Sequence record: OV032902.1
Length of the DNA: 64,000 nt
Direction: 5' to 3' (one strand)
In this document: positions 2,918-27,600 of the stretch, piece after piece
Numbering within the stretch: position 1 is the first letter of the stretch
How the letters are laid out: every line of letters starts with the position of its first letter
The notes under the pieces: generated by a model
Databases searched by the model: none
Told to the model about the DNA's origin: nothing
What the model saw: only the letters and a program-made list of their open reading frames with translations
Program-made: the position numbers and the translations under genes

Positions 2918-3982
2918 TTATAATTCGCTCATGTAAGCATCAATGTTCATTAGCTCAAGTTTCATCTCTTCTCTCATAATATCATCAGACAACTTCTTGA
3001 TAGTGCCTTCTGAACTAATGCGACGAGATTCTTTCTTGTATCTATTCTTCAGTCGACGACCATCTTGGTTATCCGAAGCAATAGTTAATGCTACTTTATA
3101 CGGACGCATAAATGCAGCTGTGTAAGCCCAGTGTTGTTGCATAGGAACATAAGCATCAGGGAACTTAAGATTCATATATTGATTCTCAGTAAATACTCCT
3201 GGGATTTGCTTTAGTGCATCCTCTACTACTGTAGCTTTAGTTAACGTTTTCTTGAAGCGCTGGATTTCTTTGAAGAGATCTTTGCCCACATGAGGGACAA
3301 GCATTTCTCCGGCAGAACCAACCATGTCTTCGTTTTCGTTATCCCACATTGCCAATGGCCATGCGTCTGCTTGACTATACATAGCATTAGGTAAAGTATA
3401 ACGACCCACAAACACGGCAACGTCTTCACGGTCTTCCATAGGCTTAGCCAGATTGTCTTTCATCCAGCGTGTAAGACTTAAAGCGAATAATGGAATATCA
3501 ATGCTCATTACACCGTAGCCATAAGTATGCTCGGCAATATCTGGACGAACCAGATTGTTCTCTGGTGTAGGAACATGGATAACTTTTAGTGGTTGCATAG
3601 ACGCATAGTTCTTACCGCTTATGATGTACTCTGCTGGATTGGCATTATCTTGAGCCATGATAATAGTAGGTACACCACCGAAGAACTCATAATGCGATTT
3701 GCCATGATGAGTAGATGTTGTGAATCCTAATGGACCAGCTATTTCATGGAAATAATCACGAGCGACATTGTATGCCTTCATAGGTTCTTCGATGCGATAA
3801 GAAAGAATTGCGTATGCTAATCTGATTAATGGATTGCGACCACTTACTTGTTTGTAGTTAGTCTGATAACGCTGGATAGTTCTCTCAGCATTAATGCGAT
3901 GTTGGATAAGTAGACGGTCGACTTCTGGGTCAACCTTCCCACCATAGGTAAGAGTTCTCTGCTTATCGATTAGCTTGTACAT
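2918..3982 (-). CDS. conserved phiKZ-like protein (gp52 position, probably virion-associated)
   Basis: 354 aa, AAGGGAG RBS, opposite-strand gene between the polymerase and chimallin genes as in phiKZ. Confidence 0.7.
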   Translation of the reverse strand: MYKLIDKQRTLTYGGKVDPEVDRLLIQHRINAERTIQRYQTNYKQVSGRNPLIRLAYAILSYRIEEPMKAYNVARDYFHEIAGPLGFTTSTHHGKSHYEFFGGVPTIIMAQDNANPAEYIISGKNYASMQPLKVIHVPTPENNLVRPDIAEHTYGYGVMSIDIPLFALSLTRWMKDNLAKPMEDREDVAVFVGRYTLPNAMYSQADAWPLAMWDNENEDMVGSAGEMLVPHVGKDLFKEIQRFKKTLTKATVVEDALKQIPGVFTENQYMNLKFPDAYVPMQQHWAYTAAFMRPYKVALTIASDNQDGRRLKNRYKKESRRISSEGTIKKLSDDIMREEMKLELMNIDAYMSEL

Positions 3983-4017
3983 GATAATCTCCCTTGAGTA
4001 TCGTCTATATAATTAAC

Positions 4018-4047
4018 TTTGAAAAGAATTACACTTCTATATAACTA
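4018..4047 (+). promoter_or_regulatory. candidate early (virion RNAP) promoter, copy 1 upstream of chimallin
   Basis: TTTGAA-N8-CACTTCTATATAACTA. The core resembles the phiKZ early promoter motif TATATTAC; 29/30 identical to 4220-4249. Confidence 0.75.
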
Positions 4048-4219
4048 GTATGCTTATCGAAAGGTAATCATAAAAAACATACCGCAAGTATGTTATAGGA
4101 AGTAGTCATTGACTGCCTCCAGCCTGTCCCGGAAAAAAGTTCAAAAGGGTTTATACCTAATAGTATAGAACTTGAAACTGGGCAACCAGTTCAATGGGAT
4201 ATCTGCCCCATGATGTGTA

Positions 4220-4249
4220 TTTGAAAAGAAATACACTTCTATATAACTA
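4220..4249 (+). promoter_or_regulatory. candidate early promoter, copy 2 upstream of chimallin
   Basis: Near-exact repeat of 4018-4047, 202 bp downstream. Confidence 0.75.
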
Positions 4250-4312
4250 AAGTGGATTGATACAATTGTCAATCAAATCGATTTGATTTTAACTCTATAT
4301 GGAGAACTTAAC

Positions 4313-6226
4313 ATGTTCAACGCACCTGGTCAAAACAAAGCAGCACAAGACAACACAGCTAAGACTGCTGAGACTCAAACTCAAACTGAAACTAACGCTC
4401 AAACTAACTCTGGTTCTGGCGCTCTAGGTTCAATGCTATCTCGTCTAGGTACAACTCACGTATCTTCTATCGGCGATGGCGCACTAGCGAAGTTCGTTGA
4501 AGTAACAACTGAAATCGCTAAAAACGATAACTCTGCTGACAGCGTTCAATTCGCACACGACAGCACTGTTGATCTAAAACTTCCACTAACGCTTTTCTAC
4601 CGCAAAGCAAAAGGCAAAGTGTACTTCTACGCTCTACTATCTGAAGAGCTACTGCACTCTCCTCTATCTGTACAAGAAGAGTTCTTGAAGAACAACTTCG
4701 GCCACAGCGGTAAGAAGATCGAAATCGATTGTCCTGTTTCTAAGTGCTGGAACGACACGTACATCAACACTGCTCGTAACTTCCTAGCAAGCAAGCTAAG
4801 CGTCGATGCAGAAATCGTTGTACCTGTACACTTCTACGCAATCTCTAAAACACAGTCAATCGTTGACCCAGGCATGCCAGAGCGTATCTACAATACTGCA
4901 CTGCAAGCACTTAAGTCTAAGTGTAACCCTGGCGAACTAGTTACTTCAGCTCTATTCAAAGAAGAAGGCATCGAAGTATCTGTAGCTACTGAAATCTGCC
5001 CTGGTACAAACGTTATCATGGCCGACGAGCGTGTAACAGCAGCTGACGCAGTTGTAACAGTTCGTGCATCTGAGAAGTCTAAGTCAAACGACGATATCCA
5101 CAAGTCTGGTGATTCAGTTCTTCTTGCATCTACAGCGGTTAAGTTCGAAACGATCTTCGCACGTCAAAACGTTATGCCTGGCATGGCGCAAGGCTTCGGC
5201 CAACCTGTACCACAGAACCACCCGGTTCTAGTTATCACAAACTCTTGTGCATACGACGGTACTTCTCGCCAAGTTATCGAAAACCCGATGACTCCAATCC
5301 TATCTGTTCTATCTATCTCTCAGCTAGCAGCAGGTACTAACTGGCAATCACTGTTCATGCCAACAGCTAAGAAAGGTCCAATCGCTCGTTCACTAGAAGC
5401 ACTAGGTCTAGTTTACGAACCGTTCCAAGCGGCAGGTGCACAGTTCATCCCGGCACGTAAGAACATTGAGTACGGAATCTCTCCATCTCAAGAAGGTGCA
5501 GTGACGTTCCAGTCATTCATCAACTCTTACTTCGTTCCTGGTTCTATGACTCTAGCGAAAGATATCGGTATCGGTACTCGTGAGTCTTGGAAAGAGCAAG
5601 TGTTCATTGCAGCGGCACGTCGCGATGCTGGCGCAAACGAGCTTCTAGTTAAGCTGATCGATGCGATCACTGACAACAAGTTCTCGCCACTATGGGCTAA
5701 CGCTAAAGATAAAGAAATCGTTCAAAGCAACGTATCTATTATCCACGGCGGTAACTACCGTACTAAAGAAGATGAAGTATCTGACATCCGTTGGATCGAC
5801 AACTTGTTTGCGTACGACAAGCTTGGTGAAACTTGTGCGAACCCTGCTGATCCAGTTCACGCATTTGCGGACTCTTTCGTTCCTGGTGCTACAACTGACG
5901 GCCACGGCCTAGAGCGTCTAGATGCACGTCGTAAAGACATCATTGCACTAGAGCCTACAGCTGAAGGTCAGATCGATACTCTGTACATCCGTGTGTTCTT
6001 CAACCCTGAATTCGCACCGATGGTTGCGGCAGCAATGTCTCAAGCAGGTATCAACATGAACCCAACTGGTCTGACTGATACGCAAGTTAACGGTCAAATC
6101 GCACAGGGCTTCGTGTACGGTCAGTCTGTTGACGCTGGTATTGCTAACTCTGTATTCCGTCCAGGTTACGTTGGCAACCAGAACAACAACCTAGCAGGTC
6201 ACGTACCAGGTACAGTGTACCTATAA
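4313..6226 (+). CDS. chmA: chimallin, phage nuclear shell protein (phiKZ gp54-like)
   Basis: 637 aa from ATG 4313 (GGAG RBS). Lies between the gp52-like gene and the nvRNAP beta' gene, behind duplicated early-type promoters. Codon usage resembles the capsid gene; termini are flexible. Based on synteny and size, no alignment run. Confidence 0.8.
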   Translation: MFNAPGQNKAAQDNTAKTAETQTQTETNAQTNSGSGALGSMLSRLGTTHVSSIGDGALAKFVEVTTEIAKNDNSADSVQFAHDSTVDLKLPLTLFYRKAKGKVYFYALLSEELLHSPLSVQEEFLKNNFGHSGKKIEIDCPVSKCWNDTYINTARNFLASKLSVDAEIVVPVHFYAISKTQSIVDPGMPERIYNTALQALKSKCNPGELVTSALFKEEGIEVSVATEICPGTNVIMADERVTAADAVVTVRASEKSKSNDDIHKSGDSVLLASTAVKFETIFARQNVMPGMAQGFGQPVPQNHPVLVITNSCAYDGTSRQVIENPMTPILSVLSISQLAAGTNWQSLFMPTAKKGPIARSLEALGLVYEPFQAAGAQFIPARKNIEYGISPSQEGAVTFQSFINSYFVPGSMTLAKDIGIGTRESWKEQVFIAAARRDAGANELLVKLIDAITDNKFSPLWANAKDKEIVQSNVSIIHGGNYRTKEDEVSDIRWIDNLFAYDKLGETCANPADPVHAFADSFVPGATTDGHGLERLDARRKDIIALEPTAEGQIDTLYIRVFFNPEFAPMVAAAMSQAGINMNPTGLTDTQVNGQIAQGFVYGQSVDAGIANSVFRPGYVGNQNNNLAGHVPGTVYL

Positions 6227-24117: not shown

Positions 24118-24164
24118 CTAATCTTATGACTAGTCTTTTATTTTTTGTCAAAAGGAATGTTCCA

Positions 24165-24647
24165 ATGTACAAATCGTCTACATTGCACGTTCAGGGGTTA
24201 TTGCAAGAATTGATGCGATTCGTAGAAGAGGGCATGACGGTGCCTTTCTGTCTATGTATCTATGACGTCATTCACAATCCTCATGATGCGTTAGCAATCA
24301 AAAACACATTAGAGCTATTCCCTAACATCGATATCCGTGTAGCTATCATGTCAGGTAATAACTCAAACGCACTTCTGGCTGCGGCAGCAGTACCAGCAGA
24401 AAAGCGTTATATAACAAGCCAAGGTATCTTCTCTTTCTCGAAGCCTGTATATGTTGGTCAAGGTTCTTACAAAGACCTAAAGATCGCAGCAGAAGCTCAG
24501 AAGATGTTGGAAGTCCGCATCGATGAAATCCTTGATAAAGCTTACAAACTTCCGAAGTCCTCACATGAGATGCACAAAGAACAAGAGATTGTTCGTGCTG
24601 AGGCAGTACGCGGATACGGATTCCAGGATTATAAGGAGATCTTATAA
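24165..24647 (+). CDS. degenerate ClpP-like protein, probably catalytically inactive
   Basis: Aligns by eye to ClpP (DALAIKNTL, KRYIT..., GQGSYKDLKI, AEAV.GYG). The catalytic His position (MIHQP) reads FSFSKP and the SPGG loop is absent. ATG 24165 has an AAAGGA RBS. Confidence 0.7.
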   Translation: MYKSSTLHVQGLLQELMRFVEEGMTVPFCLCIYDVIHNPHDALAIKNTLELFPNIDIRVAIMSGNNSNALLAAAAVPAEKRYITSQGIFSFSKPVYVGQGSYKDLKIAAEAQKMLEVRIDEILDKAYKLPKSSHEMHKEQEIVRAEAVRGYGFQDYKEIL

Positions 24648-25156
24648 TGGAAGGAAAAACTGGTATCAATAGTAAGCGCGCTGTGTTTCTTTGTACTGAG
24701 TTCAATATGGGCATGGGTAAAGAAGCTATCAAGCGCATGGAAGCATTGAGTGCAGAAAGTGATGAAGACATCCTTATTGTTATCTCAAGCTATGGCGGCT
24801 GTTGTCGTACAATGCTTGCTATTCGTGACGCAATGAAACGTTCTCGTTGTCGTATCAATACACTAGTACTTGGCAAAGCTATGTCAGCAGGTTGTTACAT
24901 CCTAGTAACTTCAGCAGCTACTGGTGTTCGTGCAGTAACCAAAGATTGTCAGATCATGATTCATGGTCCAAACGGTGTGGCTCCTCTAAATGAGAAAGGC
25001 CTTGGCAATATGGAATACTACTACGACGTTGTTAAAGAGCACTTCAAAGAAGATGCAAACTTTGATGATGAGAAACTAGATCAGCATCTAGACCGTGACT
25101 TCTACTTCATGGGTGACCAAGCTGTAGAGCTAGGCTATGCAGACGTTGTTTTATAA
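24647..25156 (+). CDS. clpP: ClpP-family serine protease
   Basis: SSYGG loop, GKAMSAG (Ser), MIHGP (His), RDFY (Asp), AVELGYAD. Confidence 0.9.
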   Translation: MEGKTGINSKRAVFLCTEFNMGMGKEAIKRMEALSAESDEDILIVISSYGGCCRTMLAIRDAMKRSRCRINTLVLGKAMSAGCYILVTSAATGVRAVTKDCQIMIHGPNGVAPLNEKGLGNMEYYYDVVKEHFKEDANFDDEKLDQHLDRDFYFMGDQAVELGYADVVL

Positions 25157-25162
25157 TAACTA

Positions 25163-25186
25163 CCTCCTTCCCGCAAGGGAAGGAGG
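25163..25186. terminator. bidirectional terminator
   Basis: CCTCCTTCCC-gcaa-GGGAAGGAGG between convergent genes. Confidence 0.8.
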
Positions 25187-25194
25187 AGTTAATC

Positions 25195-25590
25195 TTATTC
25201 TTTTTCTTTTGGCGGTTCCGTAAAGTTACCGGCCTTGTCCTTATTCTCTTTAAGCTTCTTAACAGCTTCATCCATTTGGTTCTGGAGTTCTTCTGCTCGT
25301 TCAGCTTCTTCCTGGTTGTTTTCGATAACTGCTTCCATGACCATGTCATAGAGATCGATAGGAAGATCGAGAATATCACGAATGCCCATTTGGGCTTTCT
25401 CAGGAACACCCAGTCTGATAAGTTTCTTTATCTGATGCTTGAGTATTCTTTCACTTTCCATGCTCGGGTGGTGAGTTACAGACTTAATGGGATTATAGTA
25501 ATCCGGGTCATTATAGTCAACGTAACCCATTTCCGACTCGGTAATAATTCTAGGGATAAGCTGGTCAGACGGTTTACCCGTTAGCTTCAT
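25195..25590 (-). CDS. hypothetical protein, possibly translated only as a -1 frameshift extension of the upstream gene
   Basis: 131 aa from ATG 25590, which has no SD. Frame is open back to 25719; coiled-coil C-terminus. Confidence 0.7.
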   Translation of the reverse strand: MKLTGKPSDQLIPRIITESEMGYVDYNDPDYYNPIKSVTHHPSMESERILKHQIKKLIRLGVPEKAQMGIRDILDLPIDLYDMVMEAVIENNQEEAERAEELQNQMDEAVKKLKENKDKAGNFTEPPKEKE

Positions 25591-25661
25591 ATCAAAGATA
25601 CGATCAGCAATGTCCTGAGCAATACCGTCTTTTGGAGCAAACCTTAGATTATGCGGCGTGT

Positions 25662-27152
25662 CTACGAACTCGACTGGGATGCTCGGTCCACCAGGGTAAT
25701 GAAAAAATACGCTGAAACGTTATAAGGAATAAGGTTCAATTCCTCATCTACGTTCGGCTGTGCTTTCTTACACTTAGGACAGATCCAGTTCGGAATAGCT
25801 GTAAAGACATGCATGTTCTTGATGCTGTAGTTACGAACATCACGTAGAACTTCTTTAGCAAGATCACGGTTCTCTGAGATAACACCTAGACCTTCTAGGA
25901 TATCTTCACGACTATCGTTCTCTGCTTGACCAACATAGATCTTCTTAATCCAAGACATCTGATGCTGAGCCATAACCTGGCGACTACGACGAACAATGTT
26001 TTCTTGACGTTGTTGTGCAGCTAGGTTCTCAGAAAGATCAGGGTTAACTAGATCTTCAGCAACTCGTACTACGTCAGCAATCCAACGACGACCTTCTGAT
26101 TTAAACATCTGGTATGTTGGAGTCTGGCCGATAAGACGAATAGTTGCACCACCGTAATCATAAGAACCGATAGTGTGAGAAACGATATTGTGGTTAGCCA
26201 CTTCTTCTTGATACTTTTGAACATCTTCAAGAGTAACTGATTCCTTTGTAAGGAAACGAGCAGCGGTAGCAGGGAAACGTTTGCGGTTACGCATTGCCGT
26301 CTTAGCAAAGTTTAACTTAGCAATGTTCTTACGGCGTTCTTCCATCGGGATGGTCGTGTAGTCACATTTCTGTATTTCATCGTCACCGTCCTTTTCAACT
26401 TTGAATGTATTCGAACACTCTTGATGCAGAGGATAACCAGAAGGATAAGCCGCTTCAAGAGCACCTGCTTGAACATGAGAAAGATCACTTACTAGAAGAG
26501 CAGCTTCTAGAACATGACGTTGTTCCCAGTTCTCCAAGTTAGAATCGGTAACATGATCTAGGATATAGTCAATGATTTCAGAAGTGATGTGAACATCGTC
26601 TGTTGAGTATAACAGACCATTCGTTTCAATACCGATCTTGTCACGCACGTTACGTAAACGCGTAGCAACACGGAATGTTTCTTCAGAACCAAAGCCACCG
26701 ACTTTAATCCAGAAACCAGAACACCATAAAGGAATAGTGGTGATAGAACCCGTCTTAACCGCAGCACGCATTGCGTTAAGGAAAGCACTACCTAGTAGTT
26801 TACCTTCGCTGCGTGGCTTAGGGGTAAGAGTTTTAATGCGGACCGTCTCACCATCTACTTCTTCCATCTGTGCGACATCGTTTGTGTCTTCAGGAATAAG
26901 TGCTTGATAGTTTCTGTCTTCGTCTTCAGTTTGCCAGAAAGCAGTGTTTTCTAATTGGCGCTGTTTGACATAAGCAGTTGCCTGCTCAGGTGACGGTTTC
27001 TTTGTTTTGCCCAGGCGGGCTAGCTCTTTGCCTAATTCCAGGTTCTTTTCTTCCAGAGGATAAATACCACCAGGAGCCTGGAGCACATTGCTGTGCTCAC
27101 GTTGCTCATCGTAGTGGGAAATAGGCAGGCGCAGATTTGGTTTATTTTCCAT
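25662..27152 (-). CDS. phiKZ gp77-like protein; possible tail/baseplate assembly chaperone
   Basis: 496 aa, GGAG RBS, C-terminal CPKC followed by ...YFF at a slippery site. The chaperone role is inference. Confidence 0.65.
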   Translation of the reverse strand: MENKPNLRLPISHYDEQREHSNVLQAPGGIYPLEEKNLELGKELARLGKTKKPSPEQATAYVKQRQLENTAFWQTEDEDRNYQALIPEDTNDVAQMEEVDGETVRIKTLTPKPRSEGKLLGSAFLNAMRAAVKTGSITTIPLWCSGFWIKVGGFGSEETFRVATRLRNVRDKIGIETNGLLYSTDDVHITSEIIDYILDHVTDSNLENWEQRHVLEAALLVSDLSHVQAGALEAAYPSGYPLHQECSNTFKVEKDGDDEIQKCDYTTIPMEERRKNIAKLNFAKTAMRNRKRFPATAARFLTKESVTLEDVQKYQEEVANHNIVSHTIGSYDYGGATIRLIGQTPTYQMFKSEGRRWIADVVRVAEDLVNPDLSENLAAQQRQENIVRRSRQVMAQHQMSWIKKIYVGQAENDSREDILEGLGVISENRDLAKEVLRDVRNYSIKNMHVFTAIPNWICPKCKKAQPNVDEELNLIPYNVSAYFFITLVDRASQSSS

Positions 27153-27486
27153 TTGCGAAATTCTCCAGAATCATAGTTAAGGCCTGTAAGGATGAAGTGT
27201 AAAAAGAAGTGATCGCATACGCTAGCGGTAATGTGCTAGGAGTAAGCTCACCACTGGCAACAAGAAGATGTTTCTTATCTGCCATGTATTGATCCACCTG
27301 AGCCTGTAGTTGGTTCAGACGAACAAGTGTTTGATCAGCACGTGTCTTTTCTGTTAGGACACCGTTTTGCTGAGATAGTAGACCATGTTGAGCAATGGTC
27401 GCGCCAGAACTTTTGAAGTTGGCTTCGAAGTCGTTCTTTGCTTGGATGGCATCATCCCAAGTCAAAGTTGCTTGTGCTTGAGTCAT
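27142..27486 (-). CDS. hypothetical protein
   Basis: 114 aa from ATG 27486 with GGAG RBS, overlapping the gp77-like start. Confidence 0.7.
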   Translation of the reverse strand: MTQAQATLTWDDAIQAKNDFEANFKSSGATIAQHGLLSQQNGVLTEKTRADQTLVRLNQLQAQVDQYMADKKHLLVASGELTPSTLPLAYAITSFYTSSLQALTMILENFANGK

Positions 27487-27600
27487 GTGAACTCCCGAAT
27501 AATAATAATTTGTTTTAATGTGGTTAAAAGTCATATAATTGCGAGGCCCTGTCTTTAATGATCTGTAGGCTTAATTAGATAGGAACAAAGGAGAATTCTC

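Follow-up and report, generated by a model that had tools for sequence, protein, structure and literature searches.

On the minus strand of a 64,000-nt stretch of the genome of Vibrio phage vB_VpaM_sm033 (OV032902.1, 320 kb), referred to here as the window, lies a gene whose product is a member of the phiKZ gp77 family, and the open reading frame (ORF) that follows it is in the -1 frame relative to this gene. The public record annotates the two as separate hypothetical proteins, with the downstream coding sequence (CDS), SM033_00227, beginning only at 25530, which cuts 60 nt off the ORF as counted from its first ATG and 171 nt off the stretch of conserved -1 coding sequence. Our comparison of this locus with its relatives indicates that the gp77-like gene and the following ORF very probably constitute one gene that uses a -1 recoding event of some mechanism. 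Near its 3' end the gp77-like gene reads GCG TAT TTT TTC ATT, which places a T_TTT_TTC heptamer in the X_XXY_YYZ register at 25707-25701, with 12 sense codons remaining before the stop codon at 25664-25662. In the -1 frame, a TAA at 25722-25720 is followed by a frame that is open from 25719, does not meet a stop until 25195, and contains no ATG, GTG, or TTG ahead of the ATG at 25590. An original prediction, made from the DNA sequence of the window alone, had drawn attention to this heptamer 12 codons before the stop, to a -1 frame open from 25719 and free of start codons until 25590, to the absence of a Shine-Dalgarno (SD) sequence at that ATG, and to predicted products of 496 and about 652 amino acids (aa). 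All of these details are borne out by a reading of the sequence: GGAG, GAGG, and AGGA are all absent from the 20 nt preceding the ATG at 25590, and the predicted longer product amounts to 484 + 168 = 652 aa.

The identification of the upstream protein as gp77-like, also part of the original prediction, is well founded. The protein matches phrog_4585 (E = 1.6e-44), and notes in the records of PhiPA3 and 201phi2-1 equate the homologs in those phages with phiKZ gp77 and EL gp47. The similarity to the phiKZ gp77 family covers most of the length of the protein and is accompanied by conserved synteny. Searches by tblastn with the upstream protein returned relatives in 146-211 phage records, which are essentially those of nucleus-forming jumbo phages; their hosts include Pseudomonas, Erwinia, Serratia, Salmonella, Ralstonia, Klebsiella, Vibrio, Xanthomonas, and Escherichia, with a single phage of Bacillus. 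The conserved neighbors of the gene are a gp78-like ORF, subunits of the non-virion RNA polymerase (nvRNAP), a helicase, ClpP, and a DNA polymerase, and the locus is not a tail gene module. In an alignment of 15 family members, F483 and F484 are invariant and four cysteines are near-invariant, two of them (C246 and C263) in the middle of the protein and two (C458 and C461) forming a CxxC motif near the C-terminus, 22 residues before the proposed slip site. The conservation of these four cysteines suggests a metal-binding site.

A heptamer of this kind in a single genome is not significant alone, and its significance comes only from relatives. TTTTTTC is depleted in the window, occurring eight times on the two strands against 17.3 +/- 4.4 expected from shuffled sequences, and all 100 shuffles contained at least eight copies. 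The gp77-like gene itself contains two in-frame X_XXY_YYZ heptamers. We read the corresponding region in 36 loci, comprising the window, seven metagenome contigs (25-77% identity), and 28 phage records (down to 17-20%), so that protein identity to the window ranged from 17 to 77% over the set. The phage records include KTN4 (a member of the phiKZ species), PhiPA3, 201phi2-1, Goslar, RAY, SPN3US, PCH45, RSL2, Moabite, and the Bacillus phage AgentSmith. A run of six to eight T's (T6-T8) lies on two Phe codons in 34 of the 36 loci, 8-44 codons ahead of the 0-frame stop, and the -1 frame is open across it. The T run occupies the homologous position, in the standard register, in 35 loci, and in 29 of the 30 loci that were tabulated it is the sole run of at least six T's in the gene. 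A homologous extension of 150-176 codons follows in all 36 loci, and in each of the 35 in-register loci it is in the -1 frame. The canonical X_XXY_YYZ register is found in 31 of the 36, as T_TTT_TTC, T_TTT_TTT, or, in AgentSmith, T_TTT_TTA. The run is T6 throughout the Vibrio clade, and over all loci it varies from T5 to T8 and occurs in three phases relative to the codons. The original prediction had proposed aligning gp77-like loci across the Chimalliviridae for a conserved slippery heptamer and an open, coding-conserved -1 frame; the alignment returned a T6-T8 run in 34/36 loci, a coding-conserved -1 frame in 35/36, and the canonical register in 31/36. The locus that departs from the standard register is that of Xanthomonas phage RTH11 (OQ790161.1), in which neither of the two conserved downstream frames is in register with the gene body, apparently through one frameshift and probably as a matter of homopolymer length; its annotated CDS continues into a long non-homologous tail, and the layout in its close relative LucasX is standard.

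The choice of codons within the run provides a second line of evidence. The first Phe codon of the pair is TTT in 30 of 30 tabulated loci, and the remaining Phe codons of these genes, counted in 18 deep lineages, comprise 92 TTT versus 218 TTC. In some genomes TTT is nearly or entirely avoided elsewhere in the gene, accounting for 0 of 18 other Phe codons in RSL2, 0 of 14 in Xoo-sp14, 1 of 17 in DT01, and 2 of 21 in PhiPA3. Given the usage of each gene, the joint log10 P for TTT at the first Phe codon is about -11.6; the lineages are not wholly independent, though at such distances synonymous sites are saturated. These counts show that the T run is under selection at the nucleotide level, as a constraint on Phe-Phe in the protein cannot explain the choice of TTT.

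The -1 frame itself carries strong signs of being coding. In the 150 codons past the run, summed over 30 loci, the -1 frame is free of stops, and the 0 and +1 frames contain 278 and 424, respectively. A tblastn search with the -1 product of the window matched pir03 (E = 4e-38) and BONAISHI (E = 3e-7), with alignments beginning at residue 3-4 of the -1 frame, and the homology of -1 products starts at the T run. A phiKZ-like extension used as the query matched 52 records, and members of the extension family fall into PHROGs 12109, 7580, and 13274, all of unknown function. The segment between the 0-frame stop and the first ATG of the -1 frame is informative in this respect. Pairwise differences among the seven Vibrio-clade loci in this start-less linker are distributed 174:136:311 over -1-frame codon positions 1:2:3, and amino-acid identity is highest in the -1 frame; by these measures the linker is protein-coding sequence that has no start codon. 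The first ATG of the -1 ORF lies deep within the conserved part of the extension in many loci (codon 144 in DT01, 137 in Kwan, and 91 in both KTN4 and metagenome contig L015), candidate starts vary in position from codon 24 to codon 144, and in many loci the -1 frame opens merely 2-4 codons ahead of the run. The 0-frame tail downstream of the heptamer is also conserved and is predicted to form a terminal helix, and therefore the overlap appears to be genuinely dual-coding. When the extension was scanned against 1.84 billion representative proteins, 13 hits were obtained, all of 110-183 aa, and neither an in-frame fusion nor a long standalone protein was among them. The lack of an in-frame fused version among these hits suggests that the arrangement in two frames is no accident and is being maintained. 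Taken together, the comparison shows that a T-run signal and a -1 coding frame are conserved across the Chimalliviridae, with the -1 frame coding upstream of any start codon. The features of the locus in the window are collected in Table 1.

Table 1. Features of the gp77-like locus of vB_VpaM_sm033, in window coordinates.
Feature	Position	Strand	Remarks
gp77-like 0-frame gene (phiKZ gp77 family, phrog_4585)	25662..27152	-	496 aa, including its own short C-terminal tail, then stop
Slippery heptamer T_TTT_TTC on Tyr-Phe-Phe codons	25701..25707 (T run 25702-25707)	-	Proposed -1 frame-change site
Putative dual-coding overlap: 0-frame tail (12 codons and stop, predicted C-terminal helix) and start of -1 extension	25662..25700	-	
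Start-less coding linker, between the 0-frame stop and the first ATG of the -1 frame	25591..25661	-	
-1-frame extension	25195..25701	-	168 codons and stop (25195-25197); phrog_12109/7580/13274 family
ORF as a gene caller would take it	25195..25590	-	131 aa from the first ATG
gp78-like ORF	27142..27534	-	Upstream, same transcription unit; synteny conserved
Bidirectional terminator-like hairpin closing the unit	25163..25186		Separates the extension ORF from the convergent ClpP gene

The fusion of the gp77-like protein to the next ORF by a programmed -1 frame change, the central claim of the original prediction, is strongly supported by this comparison and extends to the family as a whole. The site shows the in-frame X_XXY_YYZ heptamer with an open -1 frame that is expected of a canonical -1 site, and both the site and the coding potential of the trans-frame are conserved. 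In the mechanism that best explains these observations, the gp77-like gene and the following ORF would act as one recoded gene. Most ribosomes would stay in the 0 frame through the U run and terminate 12 codons later, giving a 496-aa form that ends in the short C-terminal helix. A fraction of ribosomes would slip back by one base on the Phe codons of U_UUU_UUC, where both the peptidyl and the aminoacyl tRNA-Phe could re-pair with UUU after the slip. These slipped ribosomes would then read 168 codons in the -1 frame to give a form of about 652 aa, in which a predicted flexible linker and helical domain take the place of the terminal helix. The existence of some ratio between the short and the long form is something we infer from this scheme. 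Ribosomal slippage fits the locus because the canonical register is present in 31 of 36 loci and because the runs are short in the Vibrio clade and in Vibrio phage pVa-21 (KY499642.1). We favor a ribosomal slip over a transcriptional one, and judging from the sequences we would put the chance that the slip is ribosomal at about even.

Several observations weigh against this reading. Phe-Phe is invariant in the protein as well, and part of the conservation of the run is thus a matter of protein constraint. Phages PhiPA3, Psa21, and FLC9 lack a canonical heptamer and have instead N_TTT_TTT, with six T's following a G or an A. In pVa-21 the run is reduced to T5, with Leu-Phe replacing Phe-Phe; this is the sole such locus, a single-tRNA slip is still allowed there, and its -1 extension is intact and homologous despite the shorter run. 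These four loci without the canonical heptamer are better suited to polymerase slippage or to a slip at the P site only than to tandem slippage. Folding of the 75 nt past the run in 30 loci with RNAfold revealed no shared downstream stimulatory structure, pseudoknots and long-range pairings having been outside this search; z-scores were mostly between -1.7 and +1.9, with four loci at -2.1 to -2.8. There is also no SD-like motif within 25 nt upstream of the run, and no Rfam element was found at the slip site. As these stimulators were not found, the signal seems to be a bare U run, which would imply a modest and perhaps low efficiency of slippage. Finally, Moabite has an annotated ribosome-binding site (RBS) at a plausible internal start in the extension, and some relatives are alike in this.

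Some of the same observations would suit transcriptional slippage, in which stuttering on the T/A run by the phage non-virion RNA polymerase or that of the host would leave some transcripts with one additional U, so that the same long form is produced. What is conserved is a homopolymer of six to eight T's irrespective of codon phase, with all three phases represented; the four loci lacking the canonical heptamer and the failure to find a conserved RNA structure or SD-like stimulator point the same way, as does the apparent frame change between the RTH11 record and its close relative, which may reflect a stretch that is error-prone to copy. Efficient transcriptional slippage in bacteria usually needs runs of about 8-9 nt or more, however, and by this standard the T6 of the Vibrio clade and the T5 of pVa-21 are short for a bacterial polymerase. 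The variety of phases also fails to discriminate between the mechanisms, since the phase is set by the Phe-Phe codons anyway. We regard transcriptional slippage as a serious alternative that is nonetheless somewhat improbable.

The absence of recoding of any kind appears unlikely. A slightly less likely form of explanation holds that these are two separate genes, the downstream protein having its own initiation, whether at an internal start (ATG, GTG, or TTG), at some non-canonical codon, or through termination-reinitiation, with the T run kept only for the sake of Phe-Phe. Every public annotation that we fetched treats the locus in this way, candidate starts with an RBS exist in some relatives such as Moabite, and the Phe-Phe pair is indeed invariant in the protein. 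An arrangement of two genes would leave unexplained why the first Phe codon is invariably TTT in genes with a preference for TTC elsewhere, as well as the coding-type substitutions and protein conservation that precede any start and begin at a run inside the upstream gene; the candidate starts are not conserved in position, and the -1 frame of many loci has been open for just a few codons when the run is reached. Plain coupling of two genes was rejected on the coding signal ahead of any start and on the codon choice in the run, and independent initiation of the second ORF is possible as an event additional to recoding. A sequencing error in the homopolymer that splits a single 650-aa gene, or a decayed pseudogene, might be suspected from the position of the split and from the RTH11 record, which looks mis-registered. 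Such an artefact is improbable in the extreme: many laboratories and platforms contributed the independently sequenced genomes and metagenome contigs, of which 35 of 36 share the two-frame layout; the 0-frame tail is conserved in its own right, as a short helix; and an in-frame fusion was not found among the hits of the scan. We rejected sequencing error and pseudogene formation on the number of independent genomes and on the conserved 0-frame tail.

A comparison of the proposed recoding with known systems shows both resemblances and significant disparities. Tail assembly chaperones such as lambda G/GT and P2 E/E+E' are produced through a conserved frameshift (Xu, Hendrix and Duda 2004, summarised in PMC5009743). 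Like these, the gp77-like locus would yield two products with a common N-terminal body, the longer made by a -1 change a few codons before the first stop; the second ORF, as judged here from its sequence, lacks a start of its own, the layout is kept over great divergence, and the products may be non-virion. In contrast, the gp77-like body is 476-720 aa in length (496 aa in the window) rather than about 100-150 aa, the gene has its place elsewhere than between those for the tube and the tape measure, slippage would occur on a plain U run, and no similarity of sequence or fold is found; Foldseek gave matches to entries called tail assembly chaperone at E > 2 only. The original prediction had gone on to identify this locus with the tail chaperone pair of chimalliviruses, of the type of lambda G/GT or P2 E/E'. 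This part is unsupported, with size, gene location, and the Pfam, PDB, and fold searches all against it. The CPKC...FF end of the protein, which had been considered to fit such a role, carries no weight, CPKC being half of the conserved four-Cys motif of the family. Lambda G/GT offers a good functional analogy, but the pair does not belong to its family on any of the three counts of size, location, and fold.

Homopolymer runs are also the site of frameshifts or transcriptional slippage in bacterial dnaX and in the transposases of insertion sequences (reviewed in PMC5009743). There, as proposed here, the short and the long product of one gene are made in a fixed ratio that is determined by a homopolymeric shifty run. 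Their sites usually carry SD-like and hairpin stimulators or have longer runs, none of which is detectable at the gp77 site, and in dnaX the frameshift yields the shorter product. Among T4 proteins, gp26 is given as a chaperone of hub assembly, and the neighboring gp51 as one that is needed for assembly and is absent from the particle (PMC3004832). The likeness of the gp77 family to gp26 consists of a weak Foldseek link between a low-confidence model of the gp77-like protein and T4-like hub assembly entries (E = 1.6e-3). The two differ in that T4 gp26 is a 23.9-kDa protein and the gp77 family has no matching Pfam hit at E <= 1. We know of no frameshift in T4 gene 26.

The possible function of the two products was approached through sequence searches and predicted structures. 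Pfam, PHROGs, and PDB sequence searches with both parts, as single sequences and as profiles, returned only PHROGs of unknown function and chance matches, and searches for related loci with single proteins gave nothing further. A word-indexed protein search yielded no new members with the family alignment and two with the extension, and as a result the alignments supplied to AlphaFold were shallow. The model of the upstream protein, built from an alignment of eight sequences, has a mean predicted local distance difference test score (pLDDT) of 59.7, with a better core at residues 134-447 and a predicted terminal helix at residues 479-495. The model of the extension (pLDDT 76) has a disordered segment of 22 residues at its start, followed by a helical domain that ends in a helix of 44 residues. 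Foldseek found nothing below E = 3 in the PDB for the upstream model, and in BFVD it matched the extension to its own family only. The upstream model matched its own family in BFVD and, more weakly, entries named "Baseplate hub assembly protein, bacteriophage T4-like" and "Baseplate protein"; given the query pLDDT of 59.7, the values for A0A6J5KPC0, which carries the first of these names (E = 1.6e-3; template modeling score 0.27/0.41), and for A0A345MN10 (E = 8.4e-4) are those of a mediocre model. The names given to family members by several depositors agree with this hub assembly designation. Among 15 members of the gp77 family, none has a Pfam match to the T4 gp26-like family at E <= 1.

In the 201phi2-1 record, gp136 and gp135 are not flagged as identified by mass spectrometry and their neighbor gp138 is. 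The phiKZ structural atlas, which covers 40 virion proteins, makes no mention of proteins of the gp77 family in its main text, nor does the main text of the paper on the Goslar structure. Our best guess, which is a tentative one and draws on the analogy with G/GT and on the gp26-like fold link of the model, is that the gp77-like protein may be a non-virion morphogenetic factor made in two forms at a fixed ratio, with a role of the assembly-chaperone type. The reliance of this assignment on a model of pLDDT 59.7 and on Foldseek hits near E = 1e-3 counts against it. It is rather doubtful, if conceivable, that gp77 and its extension represent the frameshifted tail or hub assembly chaperone of giant phages, with a large T4 gp26-like body and a ratio set by a bare U run, or that the slip is made by the unusual RNA polymerase of the phage itself. 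We make no claim of essentiality for the gene, as neither the essential non-virion protein gp29 of SPN3US (PMC5105663) nor the genes identified by transposon sequencing in PCH45 could be mapped onto the gp77 family.

Programmed -1 recoding in a phage gene is an event of a known kind; what sets the present case apart is that it would be universal in a much-studied family, where it has apparently been overlooked. The original prediction knew of no description for phiKZ-like phages, and we likewise found no prior description of the slip site in the searchable full text on phiKZ, the Chimalliviridae, or jumbo phages, including the core-genome, phiKZ-atlas, and Goslar papers, with most subscription journals lying outside this search. 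No slippage annotation is present in any public record that was fetched, and probably over 200 public genomes mis-annotate one two-product gene as two. The difficulty that the locus presents to annotation takes several forms. In Erwinia phage PhiEaH1 (NC_023610.1; locus L021, positions 1-1360) no annotation covers the gp77-like gene, which lies at the very start of the linear record, and the first annotated CDS is a fragment of the -1 extension. In Erwinia phage RAY (locus L007, positions 3499-3634) gp266 is annotated 136 nt back into gp267, and in metagenome contig L015 the gene caller gave no gene in a 480-nt stretch (3970-4451).

If the recoding is real, two proteins are encoded from a single start by a gene that essentially every nucleus-forming jumbo phage carries (about 200 public genomes), the second "gene" is mis-annotated everywhere, and the list of core genes of the family changes. 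Existing proteomic, ribosome profiling, and RNA-seq data would become an immediate target for re-searching. The products would form a protein pair under ratio control, which is a hallmark of assembly chaperones in other phages, and slippage on a bare U run with no visible stimulators could be studied at this site as a natural test case, in phages that keep transcription and translation spatially apart. Should the chaperone reading also be true, the rule of a conserved frameshift in tail assembly genes would extend to the Chimalliviridae, where no such pair has been recognised; should the phage RNA polymerase make the slip, it would be the first example of recoding by a chimallivirus RNA polymerase.

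The remaining features of the transcription unit and its surroundings were noted in passing. The gp78-like and gp77-like genes overlap by 11 nt (27142-27152), an overlap that relatives have conserved and that points to coupled translation within the unit, and homologs of gp78 and gp79 are labelled virion-associated in phiKZ-type records. The hairpin at 25163-25186 has a GC-rich stem of 10 bp with T tails on both strands and is probably a bidirectional terminator; sub-threshold Rfam matches at this position (HIV_FE on the other strand and a CRISPR repeat) were dismissed as chance. On the plus strand, the ORFs at 24126-24647 and 24647-25156 abut at 24647, and the second encodes a clear ClpP (Pfam, E = 3.4e-26). 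Both partners of this abutting pair are annotated as Clp subunits in BONAISHI, and the phage may encode a two-subunit Clp protease.

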